From Stylophora pistillata (taxonomy: Eukaryota), in assembly GCF_002571385.2 (NCBI RefSeq), contig NW_019217843.1:587336-626294 (forward strand): a stretch of 38,959 nucleotides of DNA. The letters are read 5' to 3'. The position numbers and the translations under genes were made by a program. The notes under the pieces were generated by a model that saw nothing but the letters and a program-made list of their open reading frames with translations, was not told where the DNA came from and searched no databases. Shown here in pieces: positions 13,254 to 25,200 of this stretch; the stretch's first letter is position 1; each line of letters begins with the position of its first letter.

Positions 13254-16200
13254 CTACCTATACTCGCGAGGATCAAAGTTAAGGATGTTAGCCATGTCTG
13301 AGAAGGCGGCATAACGTGCTCCATCCATGTCACTAGCTAACTGATTGTCAGATCGTAGCAGATGATTTCGACCACCGATTCTCGAGCCACATTCTGGACA
13401 TTTGCCTTCTTCCATTGCCCCTCCACACTCTGTAATGCAGTAGATGTGACCTTAAAGAATAAAAGTATCGCGTTGAGATATCGATCATGACGTAAAAACT
13501 GCAGTCACAAGGGCAACAATCATTTCATTTATAGATCTATTTTTCTCTAAACAGCCATACTCACCCTTTGGACACTTAAACCAGTGTCCCTGCGTTAGCC
13601 CCATGGCTTTAACAATCAGATCTTTCTCTTGTCTTGTCACGGCTTGGTAGAAAACTTTAAGGTTTTGTTCACGTCTGATCCTTTTCATACGATTAAGATA
13701 TCGTTCTCTTTTATCTTTGTCTAAAATTCACATTCAGATATAGGTTAGTAAACACCACCAGCTACTTACTCCAGGCGAAGATCTTTTGAGGAAATTCTCA
13801 TACGCGGACAGCTCCTAACAATTATTGCCACAAGACCAAATCCCATTTTTAACTAATATCGGACAAAATATTTCGGAGAATCTTTTTTCAAATGCAAGTA
13901 GTTTATCTTTCGCTTTCATTAAAAGGAGAAGGTGCTCCTGACTGGACAATACTAATAACATCATATATCATTGTCAGGTAAGGTAAATATCGCAGAACAA
14001 TATTCGCCCCGCGTTAAGGGAATACCGTCTCAGTCGCGGATCCAGAGGAGGGCCCCAGGGCCCCGTCCTCCCCACCCTTATTTTTGGACCAAACTGAGGC
14101 CCGAAGGGCCGAAAAAAAATTTTTGGAGACTGCCCGCCCCACCCATTTTATCTAAGGGTCTGGATGACCGGGGGCCCCCTTATCTCATGGTCTGGATCCG
14201 GCACTGATACAGTTCTACAATCACTATTCAGGTTATTGTCAGAACAATTAAAGTTGCCTTCATGTTATTCCCCAGAAAATTTAAAAAATTCCCGATTGCC
14301 TTTTTGTAAAACCAGCATATCAATCATAAGTTCACTGTGGCAAGATTGGACGTAGTCCTCTACCTATCCTGCACGTATCTCGACAATCATCTGAATACTC
14401 CTACCAAAACATGATATTTTTATCCTAAAAATGAAAAATGTTTTTGTCCTAAAATGAAAAAAATCCTTTTTCTCACCGATTACCGTCTCTGATTTCAGTG
14501 CTTGTTCTATGAAGTCAACCTTAACTCTGTCAGTAACTCTCAAACTGATTCCCCGTCCATCCAGTTGCATTTTCATCACTTTGTAGTCAGCAAGAAGCTC
14601 AGTTCTCAGCATTTCTTCATTGAGTTCCTCCAGTTCCTGATCGCTGAACCGAACTCGGGGTCGAGTGCCCATGACACGTATCCTGAGTTGGTCTATCTTA
14701 CTTTCCAGGTCAACCCTGGTTTCTTGAATCAGAATCAGTGCTTTACTGCCTTTCTGGCTTTCGGTTTCGGCCTCTATTTCCTTTTCTATTTTAGCCTTGA
14801 GCCCCTGAAGGAAATTCAAAAAGCTTATTTGATTCTCATACACATTGACTTGTTCATCTGTCAGACTCTTACAACCCAGGGACTTCGAAATTTTCTTTTG
14901 GTCGTCAGGGAAGCCGCTGATTTTCTCCACCTTGGTTTTCAGCGTTTCAACTGCCAGTTCGCGCTGCCGTTCATTGAGTAAAATTTTCTCTTTTATTTTT
15001 TCAAAGTCGGCAAGAATTGTCTTAACGATGTTCCCATATCGCAAACTGGTACGAATTGGGATCTGGCACCTCGGACAGCGTTTGAGTTGGACATTAGCGG
15101 GCTTTCCATCCTGCCCTACATCGGTTTGGTCCATCCACCGATCCATATTTTTCACTTCAAAGATGTGACCACACTCTGCCAGTTCCACGAATCGTGCGTC
15201 TGGCTCGTCTTCATCGCCGAAAAAGATCTCTGTGACTTCGGCTTTGTGACACTCTCGGCACTTTTTTGGACATGGTTCTCCACAGAGACCAATACAGGGA
15301 TGTCTGCATGGAAGGAGCCTTCTACATGGTTTGTTGCAACGAGGGCGATCACAAAGTTCGCCACATGATTTTGTGCACTTGTAATGCCTGCACCCCCAGT
15401 CACACTTCTCAGTACATCTATCGCAAGGTTCACCACATTTCTTTGTACACTTGCTGTGTTTACAGCTGTTAGCGCACTGTTTCTCGCATGGCGGACAGTT
15501 CCTGGTGCAGGGTTCAGAGCAGCTATGTCCACAAAACTGTGTGCGTCCACACTCTGCCTTACAAGGCCGGTGAACTCGACCGCGTAAACAATCACTGCAG
15601 CTACCTGCAAAACATGTAAAAAATTGGGTAAGTCCGATAGACCAAACCGTTCCCTCTGATATTTTGAGGGAAAGAACAAGTGAAAATTATAAACCGAGAT
15701 TATAGACCAAACATCAATTTGTCCAGTGTAGAAATTGTTCAGAAGTTCAAAAGAAATTTCCATCTTTTCAATGCATTTCTTAATTTGCTGCATTGCTTCA
15801 ATCTCGGCACCAGTCTTCCACTTAACTCTCATTTTTAGCTTCAGTCAGTTAATAACCTCTTCTAGAAAGGAAATATGATGAGACAAATGAAACCCTATTG
15901 CATAAAACTGAAACGATCCAGTGCATAATTCTTTCGTCGTATACTTCATTACAACTTGTTTTATTTTTTTTGGTTCATCTCCTGCAATGGCTGAGATAAC
16001 GTAAAGCAAGAGGACACAAGATCTATTTTAGAGCCCCTCGATGCTATTTTCTGTAGGCACAGCTCTCTTCATCTACAAGAATTAGACTGAAAGAAACTGG
16101 TTCTTACCGCGACAGGGGTGTTCGCAGTTTAGGATCACACCACAAGGTGCCTTACATGGACTGTACAATGGATTTACATGGCATTCAGTGAGATTTTCGT

Positions 16201-19200
16201 GTCCACACGCCCAGATTTTCTTTGTGATAGCGGCACACTTCACGGTACAATTTTCAGAGCACTTATTCGCGCACTTATGGCCACAGCGGGGTAGAATCTT
16301 TGAACAAGGTGACTGGCACAGTGCTTCAGAAGGATCTTTGGAGCAAGGTATTTTCTGGGCGTGACCACAGGGGAGAAGTTTGGAGACAGGTTCCATGCAC
16401 GGCCCACACTCTTGAAAGCATCTCCTGCGACACTTGTGATTCCGACGACAGAGAGTCTTGGCGCATGGCTTTTTACACTGGTACTCCTTGTGCTCTGGGT
16501 CTGTTGGATGACACACCATCTCGCACACGTGACCACATTCGAGTCTTGCCGAGCATGGAACAGTGCAGCCTCCCTCTGGTGCCTTCTTGAAGTCCTCGGC
16601 GCAGGATGCATGTATCACGTTTTGGGGGTGGTTCTGGCACGTGAGTAGCAATGCATCTCCCACACTGTCGCGCTGACGCATGTCGTTAACTATCCTGTTC
16701 CATAATAAACTCTTTGTTTCCAAAAGACTGATGTTACCAATGCAGAAAAACCCTTTCTTTGCCCGAGAGAGCGCCACACAAACTCTGTTTTCTGTCTGCA
16801 GGAAACCGATTTTACCTTCTTCGTTACTTCGAACGAGAGAGAGCAGAATGATGTCGTTTTCTTCTCCTTGGAAGTTATCCACTGCGCAAACTCGAACTCC
16901 ACGGAAAAAATCTTTGGGCATTTCTTTTTTGAGCTGTATTAACTGTCCAGTGTAGGCTGTAAGGACTGTGATCTGCTCTCTTTGGTAGCCTTGAAGAATA
17001 AAATAGCGACAAAGGGCAGCAATGAATTTGGCTTCGTGTTCATTTGATCTGCTCCTTCCCTCCTCCAAGAAATCCTGCGGAAAAGGAAAAGGATAGGCGA
17101 ATGTTAAAGAAAAATGAAAAATCAGTATATCAAACTCCCCCTCCAGCGCTTAATGAACTTTATTCTCCAGAAATAACACGGTGCGATGGACCTACGACAT
17201 GACTCCGGCCTCAGATGAGATATATCCCATCAAATTCATTACAGGGTTTAAATCCTGCGAACCTATGACTTAATTTTTCTGATGAGGCTTAAACAAAGTA
17301 TTAACTTTTTCCCATTTAACTTGCTTCCATTTAAATATTCGTAATAGCGCTGCAACTCCTCTCGATATTTTGAAAAAATTGTTTTCAACATACTTTTTAT
17401 TCTTTTTCCCATGCGCCTTTTCTTTATAAGCGTAACTATTATCCTACCACACCCAACACAGAAAATCGCTCACTTACCTCACTCTGAGCGTGGTCAACAA
17501 AAAACATGTTACGAGCCACTCCCTTGATGTTCTCAAAATTCATCACGGATTCGTGATTCTCCAGTTTTGGATTGTAGTAAATATGCTCCAGCATTTTAGA
17601 AATCTCAGGTCTCATCCGATGTTGTAATCGCAACCGTTCATAGGGCATTCCATTCCTCACCATTCTCTCAAAGAGTGACACTTCCAAATTGTAATCCTTG
17701 GCGAGTTCGTAAACTGTAGGATTGGGTCGGAGCTGCTGATGATCACCAATCAGAATCAAGTGTTGGCATCCGGGAGTTAGTGATGTAACAATGTGTGACT
17801 CCAGTACTTCAGCGGCTTCCTCCACAATCGTTATGCGTGGACGCAATCTTTGCAAAAGTTTGCGAAACTTTGCAGCACCTGAAATACATGATCACACCCT
17901 CTATACATGTGTACATGATATTCACAAAAAAATGAATTCATCTTAACGTCATCTTAGCCTCCTGGTAACTTTTGAAAACTGTTGCAAGTAAACTAAGGCT
18001 TACTCAAAAAGTGCTGGAAACTCCTAGTTGAGGAAGTATAATCAGATTTCCTTGACACAGCCAATGTTGGTTAATACTTAGGAAATGGAAATGCAATAAC
18101 TTCAGTAGATAGCTTTAAACCAATGAGGTTCCATTCGTCACTTGTTACCCTATTCGTGATATGACTTATTACATAAACACCTTTTGTGAATGGCAATAAT
18201 AAGAGTAAAAATCCGCTTCATAGATGCTCAGGTTACCTTCACTGATTCAAAATGGTTGATGTAACTTTGGAAATAAGTCAATGTCCTTGGAAAATTACTA
18301 GTATTGAATAATTTTGATGTTTTTTTCTTTCTTTTCTGGCATTTCCAGTTTTTTTATATAATTCTTTTAAGCTAGTTACAAAATGCTTAGTACCAAAACC
18401 ACAGAAAACCACAGACATCAAGTATTGGACAAAGTCGTTAGCTTCTATCTGAAATTGTTACACAGCTTCTTAAGCACAACTGTGTTTTACTGGATAAATT
18501 ACTGACAAATGACACACAACTTGCCTGTAGTTGTCATGCCCACGACATCAGCGTTCTTGAGTATCTCAAAATCTTCCATATTTCTTACATCCTTCAGTCG
18601 CTTGGCTCCTTCCTCAAATTTCTCTTGAAACATCGAGATAGTTCGAATGTACTCCTCCGCCAGATCCATCAGCCATCGGCGATACAGGCGCCAGCGATCT
18701 TTGAGGCTCAAACTCCAGACATTTCGAACCTGGTTTAATCAACAACAGATATGTTTTTCGATTCAGCCATGTAATTTCTGTATACCACCAACTGCATTCA
18801 AAGTTCTCATCGATTAAGTTAAGTAACAAAATAAGAGCGGGCCAAAGTTGATGTTGCAATTCACCCTCAACTGGCTATAAGAATTTGAAGCTTGACGAAA
18901 TCAATTGAGTGTCGAAGTACCTCGGTATTTAATCGGTTTTGCTTTTCTTTACTCCGTGATTGGTCCAGAAAGTTGCGCTACTCTCTCAACCAAACTGATA
19001 CACAACTAACGCCAATCGCGACTTGATCGCCCCTGTTTTCCCTTGCTTTAGGAGGTTTCCTGTTTTTTAAATTAAGTTTTTTCGTTGGCTGTTCCGGGTA
19101 TTCTTATTTCTCTGATTTACCGTTGTAACTACTTTGGTTTTGGTTTTACGACACTTAATCGGAAAGCGCTCTTATTTTGACCACGTCTTTTCTTGGCCTC

Positions 19201-22200
19201 CGATGAATTTTAACTCATACTGATGGAGAAAGCAAATGCTCACCGCTCTCGCTCTGTCAGGTTGCAAGACATCTTTCTTGCTCAGTTCGATTAACATAGT
19301 CCTCTTTAATTTCTTTTTAAGTTTGTCAGGTTTCTGAATTTGCCATCCACCTTCAGCTCCTTTGCCGAAAGCAAAAGGGTCCACAACTTTCAAACTTCCA
19401 CTTCCCGGCATCACTTTAGAACCGTACACTCTGACGTCATCAGTGTCTAAGACCCTCTGCTCTTGCATGACATCTGCTTCATACAACACATCTGGGTTAT
19501 CATTTTCCTCTTCTTCCTCCTCTTCTTCCTCTGCTTCTGCTCCTGCTCCTGCTCCCACTTAAAGTGGAACAAAAAGGAAAATATACCATTGTTCTTACAA
19601 AAGTGTTTAACGTTACTTTGCAAAAGTTGGCGTTCCGCCACCAAGCTACGCAACTACAAGCAATTCTGAAAGTGAAGAACATGCCAACTTTTCTAGGTAT
19701 TTATCGATACACTTGTAAATGAGAGATATGGTGGTCTGCTGTTTTCGGGCCAGACAGAGGATCGAGGGGCCGGGTATGGCCTTGGAAAGGTCACTATGAT
19801 GTGTTCTTCGGCAAAATAATTGACTCTCCCTGTCCAGTGGTAAAGAAGATCACAAGCGATAGAACAGCATCCCATTCAAGAAGAGTAAGGGTAGTCTTGA
19901 CCTCTATCTAAGGAACCGGAATACGCCTCGGCATAAAAGGCTATTTTGCCCCTGTCGGAAGGTTTGAAGTTTTATCTCCTAGCTCTGATGAACTCAAAAC
20001 AAATCCTACTTACCTTGTGCGACAATTCCACCAATAGCCATAATACTTTCCTTTCCGAGGGATTCTGCAAATATGCGAACATCTGCGACTCTTCCTCTAA
20101 AGCATCGTGCATGTCCAGAGTTTTCTAAGGCTCCAATCCTGATAGAATACTGAGTTGCAAGTTCCTGTTTCCTGCCAAGATACTTAGCTTCCACTTCATT
20201 CCCATCATGCCATAAGTGTGCGATGCCGGTCTCATAATCATAAGATGCTCCAATGAAGTTCCATGAATTCATATTCAACACAGCTTTCGCAAGAGGGGGT
20301 GGATGAGTTATATCTCTCCGCACAAACCGTGCCGTTAGGATTCCTCTCCCATCCATTACGCCTTCTTGACAAATTTGCAGTCCAAGGCCATGCTCGTGAA
20401 AGCTCAAGATTGATCCTCTATTTGCGGTTGGGAACACGTGTAACAGTAGCGTGATTGATGTTCTGGTGTCTAGGTCACTTCCGGGATGGTTTGGAATCAT
20501 AACAAATGAGTTAGGTGCTCCTGAGAGTTGCAAGGAACCAGTCTCATCTGGGGACCACGTGATGTTAGAAAGGATGGCTAAATTAGCTCGAGAAACTAGT
20601 TCCAGTCCAGCGCTTCGCTTGTTGAGCGGGAGCACAGCAACGGGCTGTGCTGCTAGGGAAAGAAAAAATGGAACATATGTTAAAAGCATTCTGAATTTCA
20701 CTGCATCTTTAAAGCTGGTTTTGGCATCTTTCTCTTTAAAATTAACAACTAATATTAATATTCTTTCGATGCTGTCTCATATTTCATACTACTATAAGGC
20801 CAGTAAAATTCACTCCCTGAATCTATTGATGAATCCATTACAATAGTGATTACATAGAGGATTATACGATAAAAGTGATACAGCTTTTTCTAAATGTGGC
20901 TAAGTACAGAAAGTGAAACGGGAGGTACTCTTTCTACAGATGCAAACTTGGAACTCTTGTCAGTGACACATTATAGACAGCAGAGAATCACTCATGTGAC
21001 GAAGTTTGAACATTTTCTTCAGTGCTACTGCTAAATATACTTCAAATACCCACATTGATAACTTAATTAGGTTATCCATCAACCTCCTTAAGGATGCCAG
21101 CACACATTCTGGTAATTCAAACAAGTGCGACAATTTATTGTGGAGGGAAAATGACTAAAAATGTCGTTACCTCCTTGTCCAGGATCTGACGTGTTAATAG
21201 AAAGCTGTAGCCAGTACAACATGGCGCTTTCCTTTTGTCCGCTTCTACCAGCAAAAACTTGCCTCAAAGAATCGTAATGAGCAAGGGTCATGCTGGGGAC
21301 GCGTCGATGCAGGGCGTCTTCGTGGAGCACGTTTTCATAGCATTTCTTCAGATCTTCAGCGGCCCCTTGCAGCTTTGTCGTGGTGTGATCCATTTCTTGA
21401 TGAGCATCATAGTAAGCCCTTCTGATGTGCAAGGGAACTTTCTTATCCTTCCAAGCACACAATTAGCAGAAAAATTCAGAACGTTAGTGGTTCCGTTTCA
21501 TTCTAAAGCAGTAAGGAACTACATTGCATTCAGCAAGTGTCAAGTGAAGTTCTCGAAATTTCCACAGAAATCGTCACCAATTCTGATGATGTATCTCAAG
21601 TGACGTTTGAAACCAGACCCAGAATAATCACAACGACCAAACAGAAAAAAAAGTTAACATGAGAGAATGACAATTCAAAGCAAAAACAAGCAGACCACCA
21701 AAAGCGCAAGGTGTCCAAGTTCGGATTGGTTTTAGTTTTGCCTCTGATTGCTTTAAAGGATGGTATTAGTTTTCTAAACCAATCATAGAGCAAGGTTAAG
21801 CAAAACCAAATCAAACTCAGTTTACTGTCGTTTCTCAATTGAAAATCGCCCTATCATGAGGGGGAGACATTTACGATTTCTTAACACTGCTGTTGAAGCT
21901 GTTGAATTAACAAATCAGCAGAATCTACACACTACAGCCCTATGTTTCACAAAACTGACGAGGGCAAGAAAAACAATCACAAGATTCTGCAATGCATTGG
22001 GTCTTCACCTTGTGATTGCGGTGTTTCAATTCAGACAGACTGCACGCCTTCATAATCTCACTCTGACTTCGATTTCCAATCCGCACAATCCCCTCGGAAT
22101 GAAACTTGTGGATACCTTCTAGAAACTGGTCAAGGGCATGGTTCGTGTAACAGACAATAAGAATTGGGCGACGTTCAGACACCAGCGGGGCAACTTCACG

Positions 22201-25200
22201 TTCGTCATCAAGAAATTCAGTACCAGTGTCCCACTTCAATTTGTTGTGTAACAAAACATTAGCGATCTACGATAAATGAAAAATAAAATTTTTGATCACT
22301 CTCTTCAGAGTTCGACATTATCAGGGTCGACCAAACAGACACTTACAACCTCAACCAAATATGGATTACTCGACTTTTTACCCGGGCTAAGAATTTTCTA
22401 TGAGTCCTCATTGGTTAAAGGTACGGTTTGAAACTAATATAGTTTTAATTGATTGATTGTATTACGACCTAAAGAGTAGGGTCACCAGTTAGAGTTTTTG
22501 TGCTTTAGTTGTTGTTTTTTTGTTGATTTTCTTTTGGCATGTTCAAGTTACCCTCGTCCTTGTAAATCACACACAAGAGCAGTTGCATGACAGCAAAAAA
22601 GGAACGAGGACTTGATAAATGTTCATAAGTATATTCTACCTTCAGCCCAATGTATGTCTTTCCAGTTCCCGGTGGTCCTTGAATAACCGCGAATTCTTTG
22701 GTCAGCGCCATCTGTAAAGCCCTGTACTGAGAATCATCTAGTTCAAGATCTTCCGCGGATGGCCAGGAAGCAAGGTGCAGAAGTGGAACGTTAGTTCCTA
22801 CGATAAAAAATAAAGGTAGTGGAGATAAATTGTGTTTGTTTACCAATGTCAGAGAAACCGTGTTATCTGAATTTTGAATGCAGAGGACGGCATAAAACTG
22901 ATCAAACCTTTTTGTTTGTGCATCAGTACAAAACAGAACACTTACCCCTACGCACGTCATCCCTGACGCTCAAGCCCGCAAGTCGTGTCCTCAGCTCTCT
23001 TAATGAGCTCGTGCTGTAAACAAATCAGATAATCGGTACAGTTTAATTTTTGAAGGAGGGGTCAAATAGCAATTGTGCCAAATACTTTGCTAAAAGTCAG
23101 AGTCTTGCCCTCTACAACGATGTTAAACAATTAACAAGCTTTATCATTATAGGTGACTGCCTTCGCAATTGGCTGTCAAGACTACTAATGCCCATTTAAA
23201 AGATCTTTTACGACAAGTTTTAACCATCAACAATCGATCAAGATGGATGGAAATACCAGACGCACGCATTTCTCATACGGTCTTTAATATGGTCTGTGGA
23301 CCCTCTCAATAAATGGCATTATCCACACTGACATGCATTTCTCCCCTGAAACTTACTATCTCCCCTTCACACCCACCACCAGTCCCAATTCAGTCCATTC
23401 GTTGGACCTCCTAAACAATGTAACCAACTTATTTTCCAATCTAAAATAGCACCTTCCATTGCTGCTACTCGTGTTTCCTTTCCTCATAATCGGCGTCAGA
23501 TCAAATGTCACTCGTCCTCTCAACCTGTTCCTCAGGTAAGCCGGTGCTTCAACATGTTTCTGACAACTAACGATGTATCTCTGGGTTAAAGCAAAGGAAA
23601 GAGCCAGTTTTATTGGCGCCTTTACGAAAAGTACAACGAAGAATTGAGATTGTGAAGCAGCACGTTTCTATTCAATTCATTAAAAGCATTTTTCAGCATA
23701 GAGCTGTGATGACATGGCTTAAGTACGAGAGGGATAGTCGGTGAAGGCAGCAACATCACAGGACTTGGGTCAGATCGCGAATGGTTTATAGAATGGTGGT
23801 GCTTAACCAATTAAAAGTTACTACGACACTTTTTTAAACTCTACTGCAGCTATTTATGCACATTATCTGACTTGATGAAGCATTTATAGGCTAGCCGAGT
23901 GTTTAAACTGAAATGGAAATCTCCCGATAAAAAGTTGTATTATTTAGCTTTATGTGAATCCCAAATATTCTTAGAGTCTTTGATGAACGACAGAAGACAA
24001 GAATTCCCAAAGGATGAGAAAAATATTTTGAAAAACTAGAGAACGATTTATGAAAATTTCGATTTATGACAGTCCTTCTTATCATTCAAACATTTTTTCT
24101 TTCCTCATCGTGTTTGACTTACAAATCCTGAACGACAGCGTAAGAAACCACCGTTAAAACGAAAAAGAAAAAAAAAAAAAAAGAAAAAAAGAAAACAACG
24201 ACACAAAAATAAAACGAAAATACTCTGAAAAAGATATTTCTCGGTTGATCATACGTTACCTGTAAGGGAAGTTTGTGTGGCTCAACTTCTTTCAACCCCT
24301 CAAGGATGTGACGATACGCTTCAAAGTAAACGGTGCTCTCTACCATTTGATACACTTCACCCCCTTCAATTCTCACATTATCAGATAGTTTGATGAATTG
24401 AATGTCCACTAACCCCTACAGAAAAAAAAAAAGCAGTTACCACTGGATGACAGTTTAAAGAGTTTTGAGAGACTTCGATGGGAGAACCAGTCGGATTTGA
24501 TATACTACGATAGGTAATGATGAGGGAAGCATAATGAGCCGTACAGTTACCTGTTTTAAATCTTTGACATCGCGATTGGCCACAGTTGCAAACACAAAAC
24601 TGCCAAACTTATCTTTAGAAAGACACATCAGTGAGCCAAAGATAAGCCGCTTGCTGTTTTCCCAACGTACATTCCTCAAATTCATGTTGTCAAACTTTAC
24701 TTTGTACTGGAGTCCGTTGGACGTACACAAGGGGTACAGCAACCGGACGTCTTTATACACCCGTATGTCCTGTAGTGCACCAATCTTAGCGGAGCCAATA
24801 CGTTCTAATAACTTGGCAATCCCTTCACGAAGGGGCCTCACGAAATCTTCGCGGAGGAGCCGAAACTGCACGTCTAAATAATGTTCTGCATTATGATAGC
24901 TCCCGTCAACTTTGTTCCTTCTGAGGAAGGGTCTTTCTCCGGTCAAAATGTCTTCCTGAGTCGGAATAACACTGAGATCTCGGAAATCATTGGGGGGGTT
25001 TAATTCATCATTCTCACCGGCTGACAATTTAAAAAAATCAGTTACAATCAGCATAAGGAATATTTTTCTCTTAACCGAATAGGATTACGCATCTCTCACC
25101 ATTTCGTTGTAATCTTCCTCTGCCTGGTCTCCTCTCGTCTTCTTTTCTTTTCAGTTCGGAAGCCTTCTCTGTTTTTAATTTCATTAGTTCACCCGCTTCC

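Follow-up and report, generated by a model that had tools for sequence, protein, structure and literature searches.

DDX1, a DEAD-box helicase of superfamily 2 (SF2), carries a SPRY domain inserted in its first RecA lobe (RecA1), between motifs I and Ia, and this SPRY domain is thought to be an interaction platform. In TRIM-type E3 ligases with PRY-SPRY/B30.2 domains, and in plant NLRs with integrated domains, target recognition comes from an appended beta-sandwich or decoy domain. Here we describe a comparable arrangement in the coral Stylophora pistillata, found in a stretch of 38,959 nucleotides (contig NW_019217843.1 of RefSeq assembly GCF_002571385.2, positions 587,336 to 626,294 of the forward strand; hereafter "the window", with positions counted from its first letter). 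In one homologue of the RNA helicase ZNFX1 encoded there, a lectin-fold domain is, by alignment to the human protein, nested in the regulatory insertion 1C, with a linker of about 25 residues separating it from the downstream homologue of the human plug helix. As in DDX1, a ConA-clan beta-sandwich is here embedded in RecA1 of an RNA helicase, whereas the coral host belongs to superfamily 1 (SF1), its domain is of the Laminin_G_3 type, and it sits on the tether of a putative auto-inhibitory element, which the SPRY domain of DDX1 does not. The likeness to TRIM ligases and plant NLRs is one of concept, i.e. an immune effector enzyme gaining a recognition module, with no sequence relationship, and the coral domain differs from theirs in being internal to the helicase core.

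The closest described system is human ZNFX1 itself. In its cryo-electron microscopy structure the first RecA lobe contains an unusually large, otherwise variable 1C insertion (residues 688-978); an acidic plug helix within 1C (828-836), carried on flexible loops, occupies the RNA groove and holds the helicase in an auto-inhibited state, this plug may also communicate with the E3 part, and homophilic 1C-1C contacts stabilise both polymer forms of the protein (Naydenova et al., 10.1101/2025.10.14.682297). Our reference was chain A of PDB entry 9q9z, in which chain numbering equals residue numbering plus 87, an offset derived from the position of the Walker B EEAA at chain 1093-1096. The human and coral proteins have in common the N-terminal ZNFX1 domain, an SF1 helicase with 1B and 1C insertions, the EEAA Walker B, a plug-helix motif after an acidic run, the NFX1 zinc-finger stalk and the RZ finger. 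They differ in the loop on the N-terminal side of the plug, which spans about 20 residues in human ZNFX1 and in the coral gene contains a ConA-like domain of 213 residues. Human ZNFX1 is, moreover, a single gene whereas the coral gene is one of at least 19 loci. The exons of the coral gene from motif Ia to Walker B, and two elements within them, are:

22008-22268, minus strand: exon with helicase motif Ia, from RNA and sequence.
21171-21446, minus strand: upstream 1C exon; codons 21444-21172 align with human chain 793-877 (residues about 706-790).
20014-20652, minus strand: lectin-fold exon, 639 nt, free of stop codons.
20650-20655, minus strand: tandem NAGNAG acceptor (tag/cag), giving an exon start at 20652 or 20649, one Ala codon apart.
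19242-19557, minus strand: downstream 1C exon, a Gly/Ala and poly-Glu linker followed by the plug-helix motif; aligned with human chain 898-1003.
19454-19480, minus strand: putative plug-helix homologue, nine codons (EADVMQEQR) opposite human EADLIQADR, chain 915-923.
18524-18727, minus strand: last 1C exon; codons 18726-18526 align with human chain 1008-1073.
17477-17877, minus strand: Walker B exon with deviant EEAA, end of AAA_11 and start of AAA_12, in open stretch 17442-17891.

The plug-helix homologue starts at residue 26 of the downstream exon, that is, after 25 in-frame residues and the Val junction codon that follow the lectin-fold exon, and the domain itself enters at what in human ZNFX1 is a short loop (residues about 791-810). 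As a single phmmer query against PDB sequences the acidic exon (19555-19244) gave no match, and only a profile of this exon from eight loci reached human ZNFX1 (chain 898-1003, E 3.3e-6). The motif DVLYEAxVMxxQRVLD is kept in coral paralogs both with and without the lectin-fold domain.

A sequence-only reading of the window had proposed that 20014-20652 is a stop-free exon with strong splice sites, in phase 1-1, lying in the RecA1 insertion region between exon 7 (motif Ia) and exon 12 (Walker B), and all of this was borne out. Both of its splice sites fit the consensus, with a polypyrimidine tract and ...ccctag directly before the exon and gtaagt directly after it. It opens with the last two nucleotides of a codon and closes with the first nucleotide of another, and has 212 in-frame codons between them; being in phase 1-1, it could be skipped without loss of the frame. 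Three other exons (21446-21171, 19557-19242 and 18727-18524) lie in the interval from motif Ia to Walker B and fit the numbering from 7 to 12.

RNA data show that the exon is used. Among 20 public runs that contain part of 19100-21500, 14 are of RNA type and come from several studies, and these contain 0.43-0.58 of the sampled words of that segment. Exons make up 0.51 of the segment with the lectin-fold exon (three exons) and 0.25 without it, so that the word share in all RNA-type runs requires the exon. Four runs were mapped on 17300-22350 for junctions, including one of raw reads (X24) and two of contigs (X9 and X1), and both junctions predicted by the sequence-only reading were found. The upstream one, 21171>20652, is spanned by four X24 raw reads and by contigs from both X9 and X1, of which X1 record 4 connects 21446-21171 with 20652-20014. 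The downstream one, 20014>19557, occurs in X9 record 7, which runs through 17723-17877, 18524-18727 and 19242-19557 straight into 20014-20651 (record positions 615-675 being 19497-19557), and in X1 a 27-nt loose end at 20014 is identical to the beginning of the 19557 exon. Three studies contain inclusion junctions for the two sides of the lectin-fold exon. The sole splice variant detected was the alternative acceptor joint 21171>20649 (two reads and one contig), and read depth in X24 was 4.9-9.7 over the lectin-fold exon and 4.6-10 over its neighbours. The skip joint 21171>19557 was not among the listed joints, the poly-Glu repeat at 19497-19565 being masked so that a minor skipped form could escape, and there was no loose end at 21171 among those listed for the four mapped runs. 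The lectin-fold exon is a coding exon of a ZNFX1-family gene and is predominantly, perhaps always, included.

Three other features were seen in the same reads. The tract at 19497-19565 is a GAA/GAG run coding for poly-Glu/Ala, and its masking leaves no junction counts landing at 19557. In the intron 18728-19241, a short element at 19122-19173 attracts, in each of the four runs, opposite-orientation reads with many different flanks; it is a dispersed repeat whose transcripts stem from other copies, and an Rfam search of 18700-20020, this repeat included, gave no match. At 17727-17879 and 18524-18584 the raw-read runs contain a second read set with at least five linked differences, the joint 17879>18527 and one extra A; at 95% identity, the sampling has here picked up either a divergent allele or a close paralog.

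The exon is predicted to encode an autonomous ConA-like beta-sandwich (jelly-roll) of the Laminin_G_3 type, in line with the LamG/ConA-like fold that had been suggested for it. Pfam Laminin_G_3 scores 29.5 bits on the exon against a gathering score of 27.6 (residues 121-203, profile positions 72-150), 30.4 bits on the orthologous exon P0001 and up to 208 bits on relatives, and the ESM Atlas returned the same assignment. The Pfam Pentaxin threshold was not reached (18.7 versus 25 bits), so that pentraxin likeness is structural only, and phmmer of the exon against PDB sequences gave a chance match only. An AlphaFold2 model of the isolated domain, built from a 60-sequence alignment (pLDDT 94.6, pTM 0.91), is all-beta, with 14 strands and one short C-terminal helix. 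Foldseek and VIA-align gave structural neighbours with Z of 15-21 spanning 165-200 residues at identities of 9-16%. The best is the carbohydrate-binding domain 4 of the arabinanase AbnA (Z 21; rmsd 2.5 over 187 residues), alongside the lectin-like N-terminal half of the binding regions of clostridial neurotoxin and NTNH (Z 18-20.6), pentraxins (Z 15.6-17.7) and CBM40 sialic-acid modules (Z 15-17); LamG/LNS domains scored Z 13-14. What the coral domain has in common with the pentraxins, CBM40, AbnA domain 4 and the clostridial domains is the jelly-roll; at such identities the kinship is at the level of the fold only, and a shared fold indicates no ligand or function.

Where else does this exon occur? 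A phmmer search with it against a library of 1.84 billion proteins found 623 relatives, the long ones among them matching Laminin_G_3 strongly. Eleven of the best 150 were scanned with Pfam and proved to be extracellular-type mosaics or single-domain fragments, with partner domains that include F5/8C, CUB, C-lectin, WSC, VWA, Sushi, PKD channel and Tectonin; none of the 11 combines a helicase with a Laminin_G_3 domain, and no other long match among the best 150 of the 623 has its match at the ZNFX1-type position. The best short matches are single exons called as open reading frames and read into the intron, and their contigs show the order Ia, 1C-up, LamG, 1C-acid, 1C-down, Walker B. Comparison of orthologous coral loci thus gave the same exon order, which is common to five other loci: two in the S. 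pistillata genome (on contigs C1156 and C52) and three elsewhere (L001, L003 and L020). Exon identity to the window copy is 66-68% for L001, 50-52% for L003 (which has very short introns) and 45% for L020 and for L021, both of the latter being from run SRR32085965, a Pseudodiploria strigosa sample (PMC12616652).

Altogether the exon is found at the same position in loci of three other coral-type assemblies. Within S. pistillata itself, 69 LamG-like exons were counted, of which only three are of the ZNFX1-context type: the window copy and those on C1156 (82% identity) and C52 (47%), both inside colinear ZNFX1-like genes. These three loci stand among at least 19 ZNFX1-like AAA_12 regions in the genome. 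The earlier suggestion of a lineage-specific domain has to be modified: the exons form one clade, and the domain is not private to this gene or to this species. As for the wider family, contigs C36, C283, C776 and C920 carry at least 14 further, clustered ZNFX1-like AAA_12 regions, many of them in open frames of about 880-2600 codons and hence largely intronless; the ZNFX1-like family has undergone a large expansion in this genome.

A tree of 69 domains unites the six exons with proven helicase context and four others of unknown context in one clade (SH-aLRT 98), and a single clade points to one insertion into a phase-1 intron followed by gene duplication. The sister group of this clade includes S. 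pistillata exons on C266 and C83, each with PKD repeats and a REJ domain downstream, and these are the nearest relatives outside the ZNFX clade (32-36% identity). The donor was thus of the polycystin-1/REJ-like receptor type, contributing an ectodomain exon, and the earlier proposal of an origin from extracellular-type modules agrees with this. The C266 and C83 exons share with the ZNFX copy a single-exon module size and the Pfam family, whereas they are extracellular, followed by PKD repeats and REJ, and the ZNFX copy lies in a helicase gene. A cysteine pair is present in 40 of 48 and 37 of 46 rows of non-ZNFX relatives (an alignment outside which the C266 and C83 exons fall) but in none of nine and none of seven rows of the ZNFX clade. 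That clade has lost an ancestral cysteine pair, as would fit a domain that left an oxidising compartment for a reducing one.

The window contains a second ZNFX1-like gene, paralog B, which we read over window 1-7555 (minus strand) and the adjoining contig segment G000:C60:577400-587335 (L024). The gene with the lectin-fold exon is referred to here as A. At the corresponding position paralog B has:

1644-1894, minus strand: single 251-nt phase-1 intron between the two flanking exons.

Between these flanking exons there is no trace of LamG-like sequence, in agreement with the sequence-only reading, which had put about 250 nt and no such exon there. Paralog B has a frameshift in its 1C-up exon (about 2010-2030) and an in-frame TGA in its 1C-acid exon (about 1429-1431), the first 146 residues (the first half) of its AAA_12 exon are missing, and its RZ exon is matched only over the first 22 residues; it is therefore probably a decaying copy or pseudogene, unless these are assembly errors. 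On contig C1156 (12000-55000; L016, L018 and L023) there are copies of the two window genes, their order unchanged: A' has the domain, and in B' no lectin-fold domain is detectable. With dS of 0.12-0.6 to the window copy, these copies represent a segmental duplication and not a haplotig. In the helicase tree (A, A', L001), (B, B') and C52 form a trichotomy, and the path lengths to A (0.52-0.58 for B, 1.03 for C52) favour loss of the exon in B and B' over gain after the B split.

Between the two ZNFX1 paralogs there is also a 623-codon open frame (8903-10771, minus strand) that combines a Mutator-like transposase C-terminus, an Exuperantia/DEDDh RNase-H-like exonuclease domain and a PML C-terminal domain; it appears to be an exonuclease gene derived from a transposon, one of the type associated with how PML arose.

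Selection was measured as dN/dS by the Nei-Gojobori method on tblastn-anchored codons. Between the window and C1156 copies the LamG exon has dN/dS 0.29 (dS 0.31), the flanking 1C exons 0.16-0.31 and the catalytic exons 0.15; between the window copy and L001 the values are 0.12 for the LamG exon (with dS of about 1.6, near saturation), 0.04-0.12 for flanking 1C and 0.05-0.09 for catalytic exons. The lectin-fold exon evolves as the rest of 1C does, under clear purifying selection that is looser than on the motor core. Within the ZNFX clade conservation reaches at least 90% at 58 positions, and six of these are specific to the clade (S20, L42, S83, Q92, H148 and N151).

Outside the interval from motif Ia to Walker B, gene A has the remaining parts of a ZNFX1 protein:

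24458-25084, minus strand: open stretch with the ZNFX1 N-terminal domain (PF25396), 104.4 bits.
22508-22969, minus strand: open stretch with the Walker A exon, start of AAA_11, from Pfam.
16085-17149, minus strand: AAA_12 (RecA2) and the first NFX1-type zinc fingers; human chain 1198-1451, E 3e-95.
13257-13450, minus strand: RZ finger (PF20173), last exon, 59.9 bits, in open stretch 13257-13451.

Judged by these domains and alignments, the host gene is a complete ZNFX1-family homologue, with the ZNFX1 domain, AAA_11/12, EEAA, NFX1 fingers and RZ finger; the sequence-only reading had taken it for a ZNFX1 gene. The coral IVEEAAEV aligns with human chain 1091-1098 (E 1.5e-49), and residues 17-270 of the 16085-17149 exon span human chain 1198-1451, Cys/His-rich fingers included. 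The NFX1-type stalk of the family is present by this alignment, Pfam zf-NF-X1 having no match in the zinc-finger region, and the 440-residue Cys-rich exon that comes next had no PDB match. The RZ finger keeps the spacing C-x3-H-x6-C-x8-C-x2-C-x8-H with six of six key positions as in human, so that it retains the zinc ligands and the catalytic Cys/His pair at human spacing; we infer a splice between its exon and the preceding one.

What the domain does there is a matter of weighing several explanations. We consider it likely that, beyond its anatomy and origin, the domain in the plug tether gives these paralogs an added input beside RNA. Because it sits on the tether, it would most likely be an added binding module, for a protein, a glycan-like ligand or another ZNFX1 copy; occupancy of the module would bias plug docking and so change RNA access, ATPase and downstream E3 activity, and could also bias 1C-mediated polymer contacts, with the result that paralogs with the domain would have an input besides RNA. 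Several points weigh against this. The anatomy is shown and the ligand, the binding site and the regulatory effect are inferred only; the equivalence of the plug comes from a profile alignment to one human chain, together with a preprint; the Laminin_G_3 match on the window exon is partial and only 2 bits over threshold; folding constraints alone could account for the purifying selection; and the occurrence covered is that of stony corals. When the domain and the plug exon were folded together as two chains, the prediction scored 0.00, which is no evidence for or against contact. One may also consider a stronger form, in which the domain is a ligand-gated latch and a viral, bacterial or algal-symbiont glycan or protein either draws the plug out of the RNA groove or keeps it in place. 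This we regard as quite unlikely; if true, a subset of coral ZNFX1 proteins would integrate two danger signals before helicase, ubiquitin ligase and polymerisation are switched on, and animals would have a counterpart to the sensor domains integrated in plant NLRs. The domain might instead act mainly by adding 1C-1C contacts that drive or tune ZNFX1 polymers, with no sensing of foreign ligands. Homophilic 1C contacts do stabilise both human polymer forms, and pentraxin-like folds often oligomerise, but the closest structural relatives of the domain are mostly monomeric carbohydrate-binding modules, and we think such a role unlikely.

A module that adds an input should also be set against one that does nothing. 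A domain tolerated in a variable loop might be kept only because misfolding harms the protein, with neither ligand nor regulation. That 1C is otherwise variable in human, that dN/dS of the exon is not below that of the flanking 1C exons and that paralogs B and B' lack the domain all agree with this. Against it speak the retention of the domain in several species and in two paralog lineages that diverged deeply (47% identity), the 58 conserved positions of the clade and the decay of the domain-free copy B, and we find a mere passenger or spacer unlikely. The sequence-only reading had further proposed a splicing switch, i.e. a cassette exon whose alternative splicing toggles the domain between two helicase isoforms. 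Its phase would allow this, paralog B shows that a domain-free protein is architecturally possible, and the masking of 19497-19565 makes the 21171>19557 joint unlistable. Yet only inclusion junctions and the 3-nt NAGNAG variant were seen, and neither a skip joint nor a loose end at 21171 is among those listed; the upstream junction has six inclusion reads where constitutive neighbouring junctions have 1-12, the depth of the exon equals that of its neighbours, and the word share in every RNA-type run requires it. With the skip junction not directly scorable, the switch found no support and we rate it very unlikely. Finally, nothing except the location in a long, intron-rich region speaks for a separate nested gene or a chance open frame; that idea is refuted by RNA contigs that join the exon to helicase exons on both sides, the colinear arrangement is kept in five other loci, and its probability is negligible. 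The reading we prefer is still that of an added input on the plug tether.

In about 8.4 million searchable papers and preprints we found no description of ZNFX1 joined to a LamG/ConA-like domain, as the sequence-only reading had suspected, and cnidarian ZNFX1 is mentioned only in passing; a single-cell preprint on S. pistillata lists Znfx1 among the immune genes expressed in the alga-hosting cell state. A subfamily of ZNFX1 that carries an integrated lectin-fold domain, at a site with meaning for the mechanism, is thus apparently undescribed.

The interest of the finding lies mainly in the evolution of innate immunity and the regulation of helicases. ZNFX1 is a newly understood immune enzyme, in which RNA displaces the acidic plug and thereby turns on the helicase and two E3 activities. 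In corals the family has at least 19 loci, and one branch of it has an extracellular-type recognition fold on the plug tether. Even if the domain is only structural, this is a clean and datable move of an ectodomain exon into the core of a cytosolic enzyme, with the disulphide-type cysteine pair lost. If the domain binds something, it would be an example of an RNA sensor gaining a second input via exon shuffling, and would help to find out what the ZNFX1 paralogs of corals recognise, of relevance to coral disease and symbiosis.

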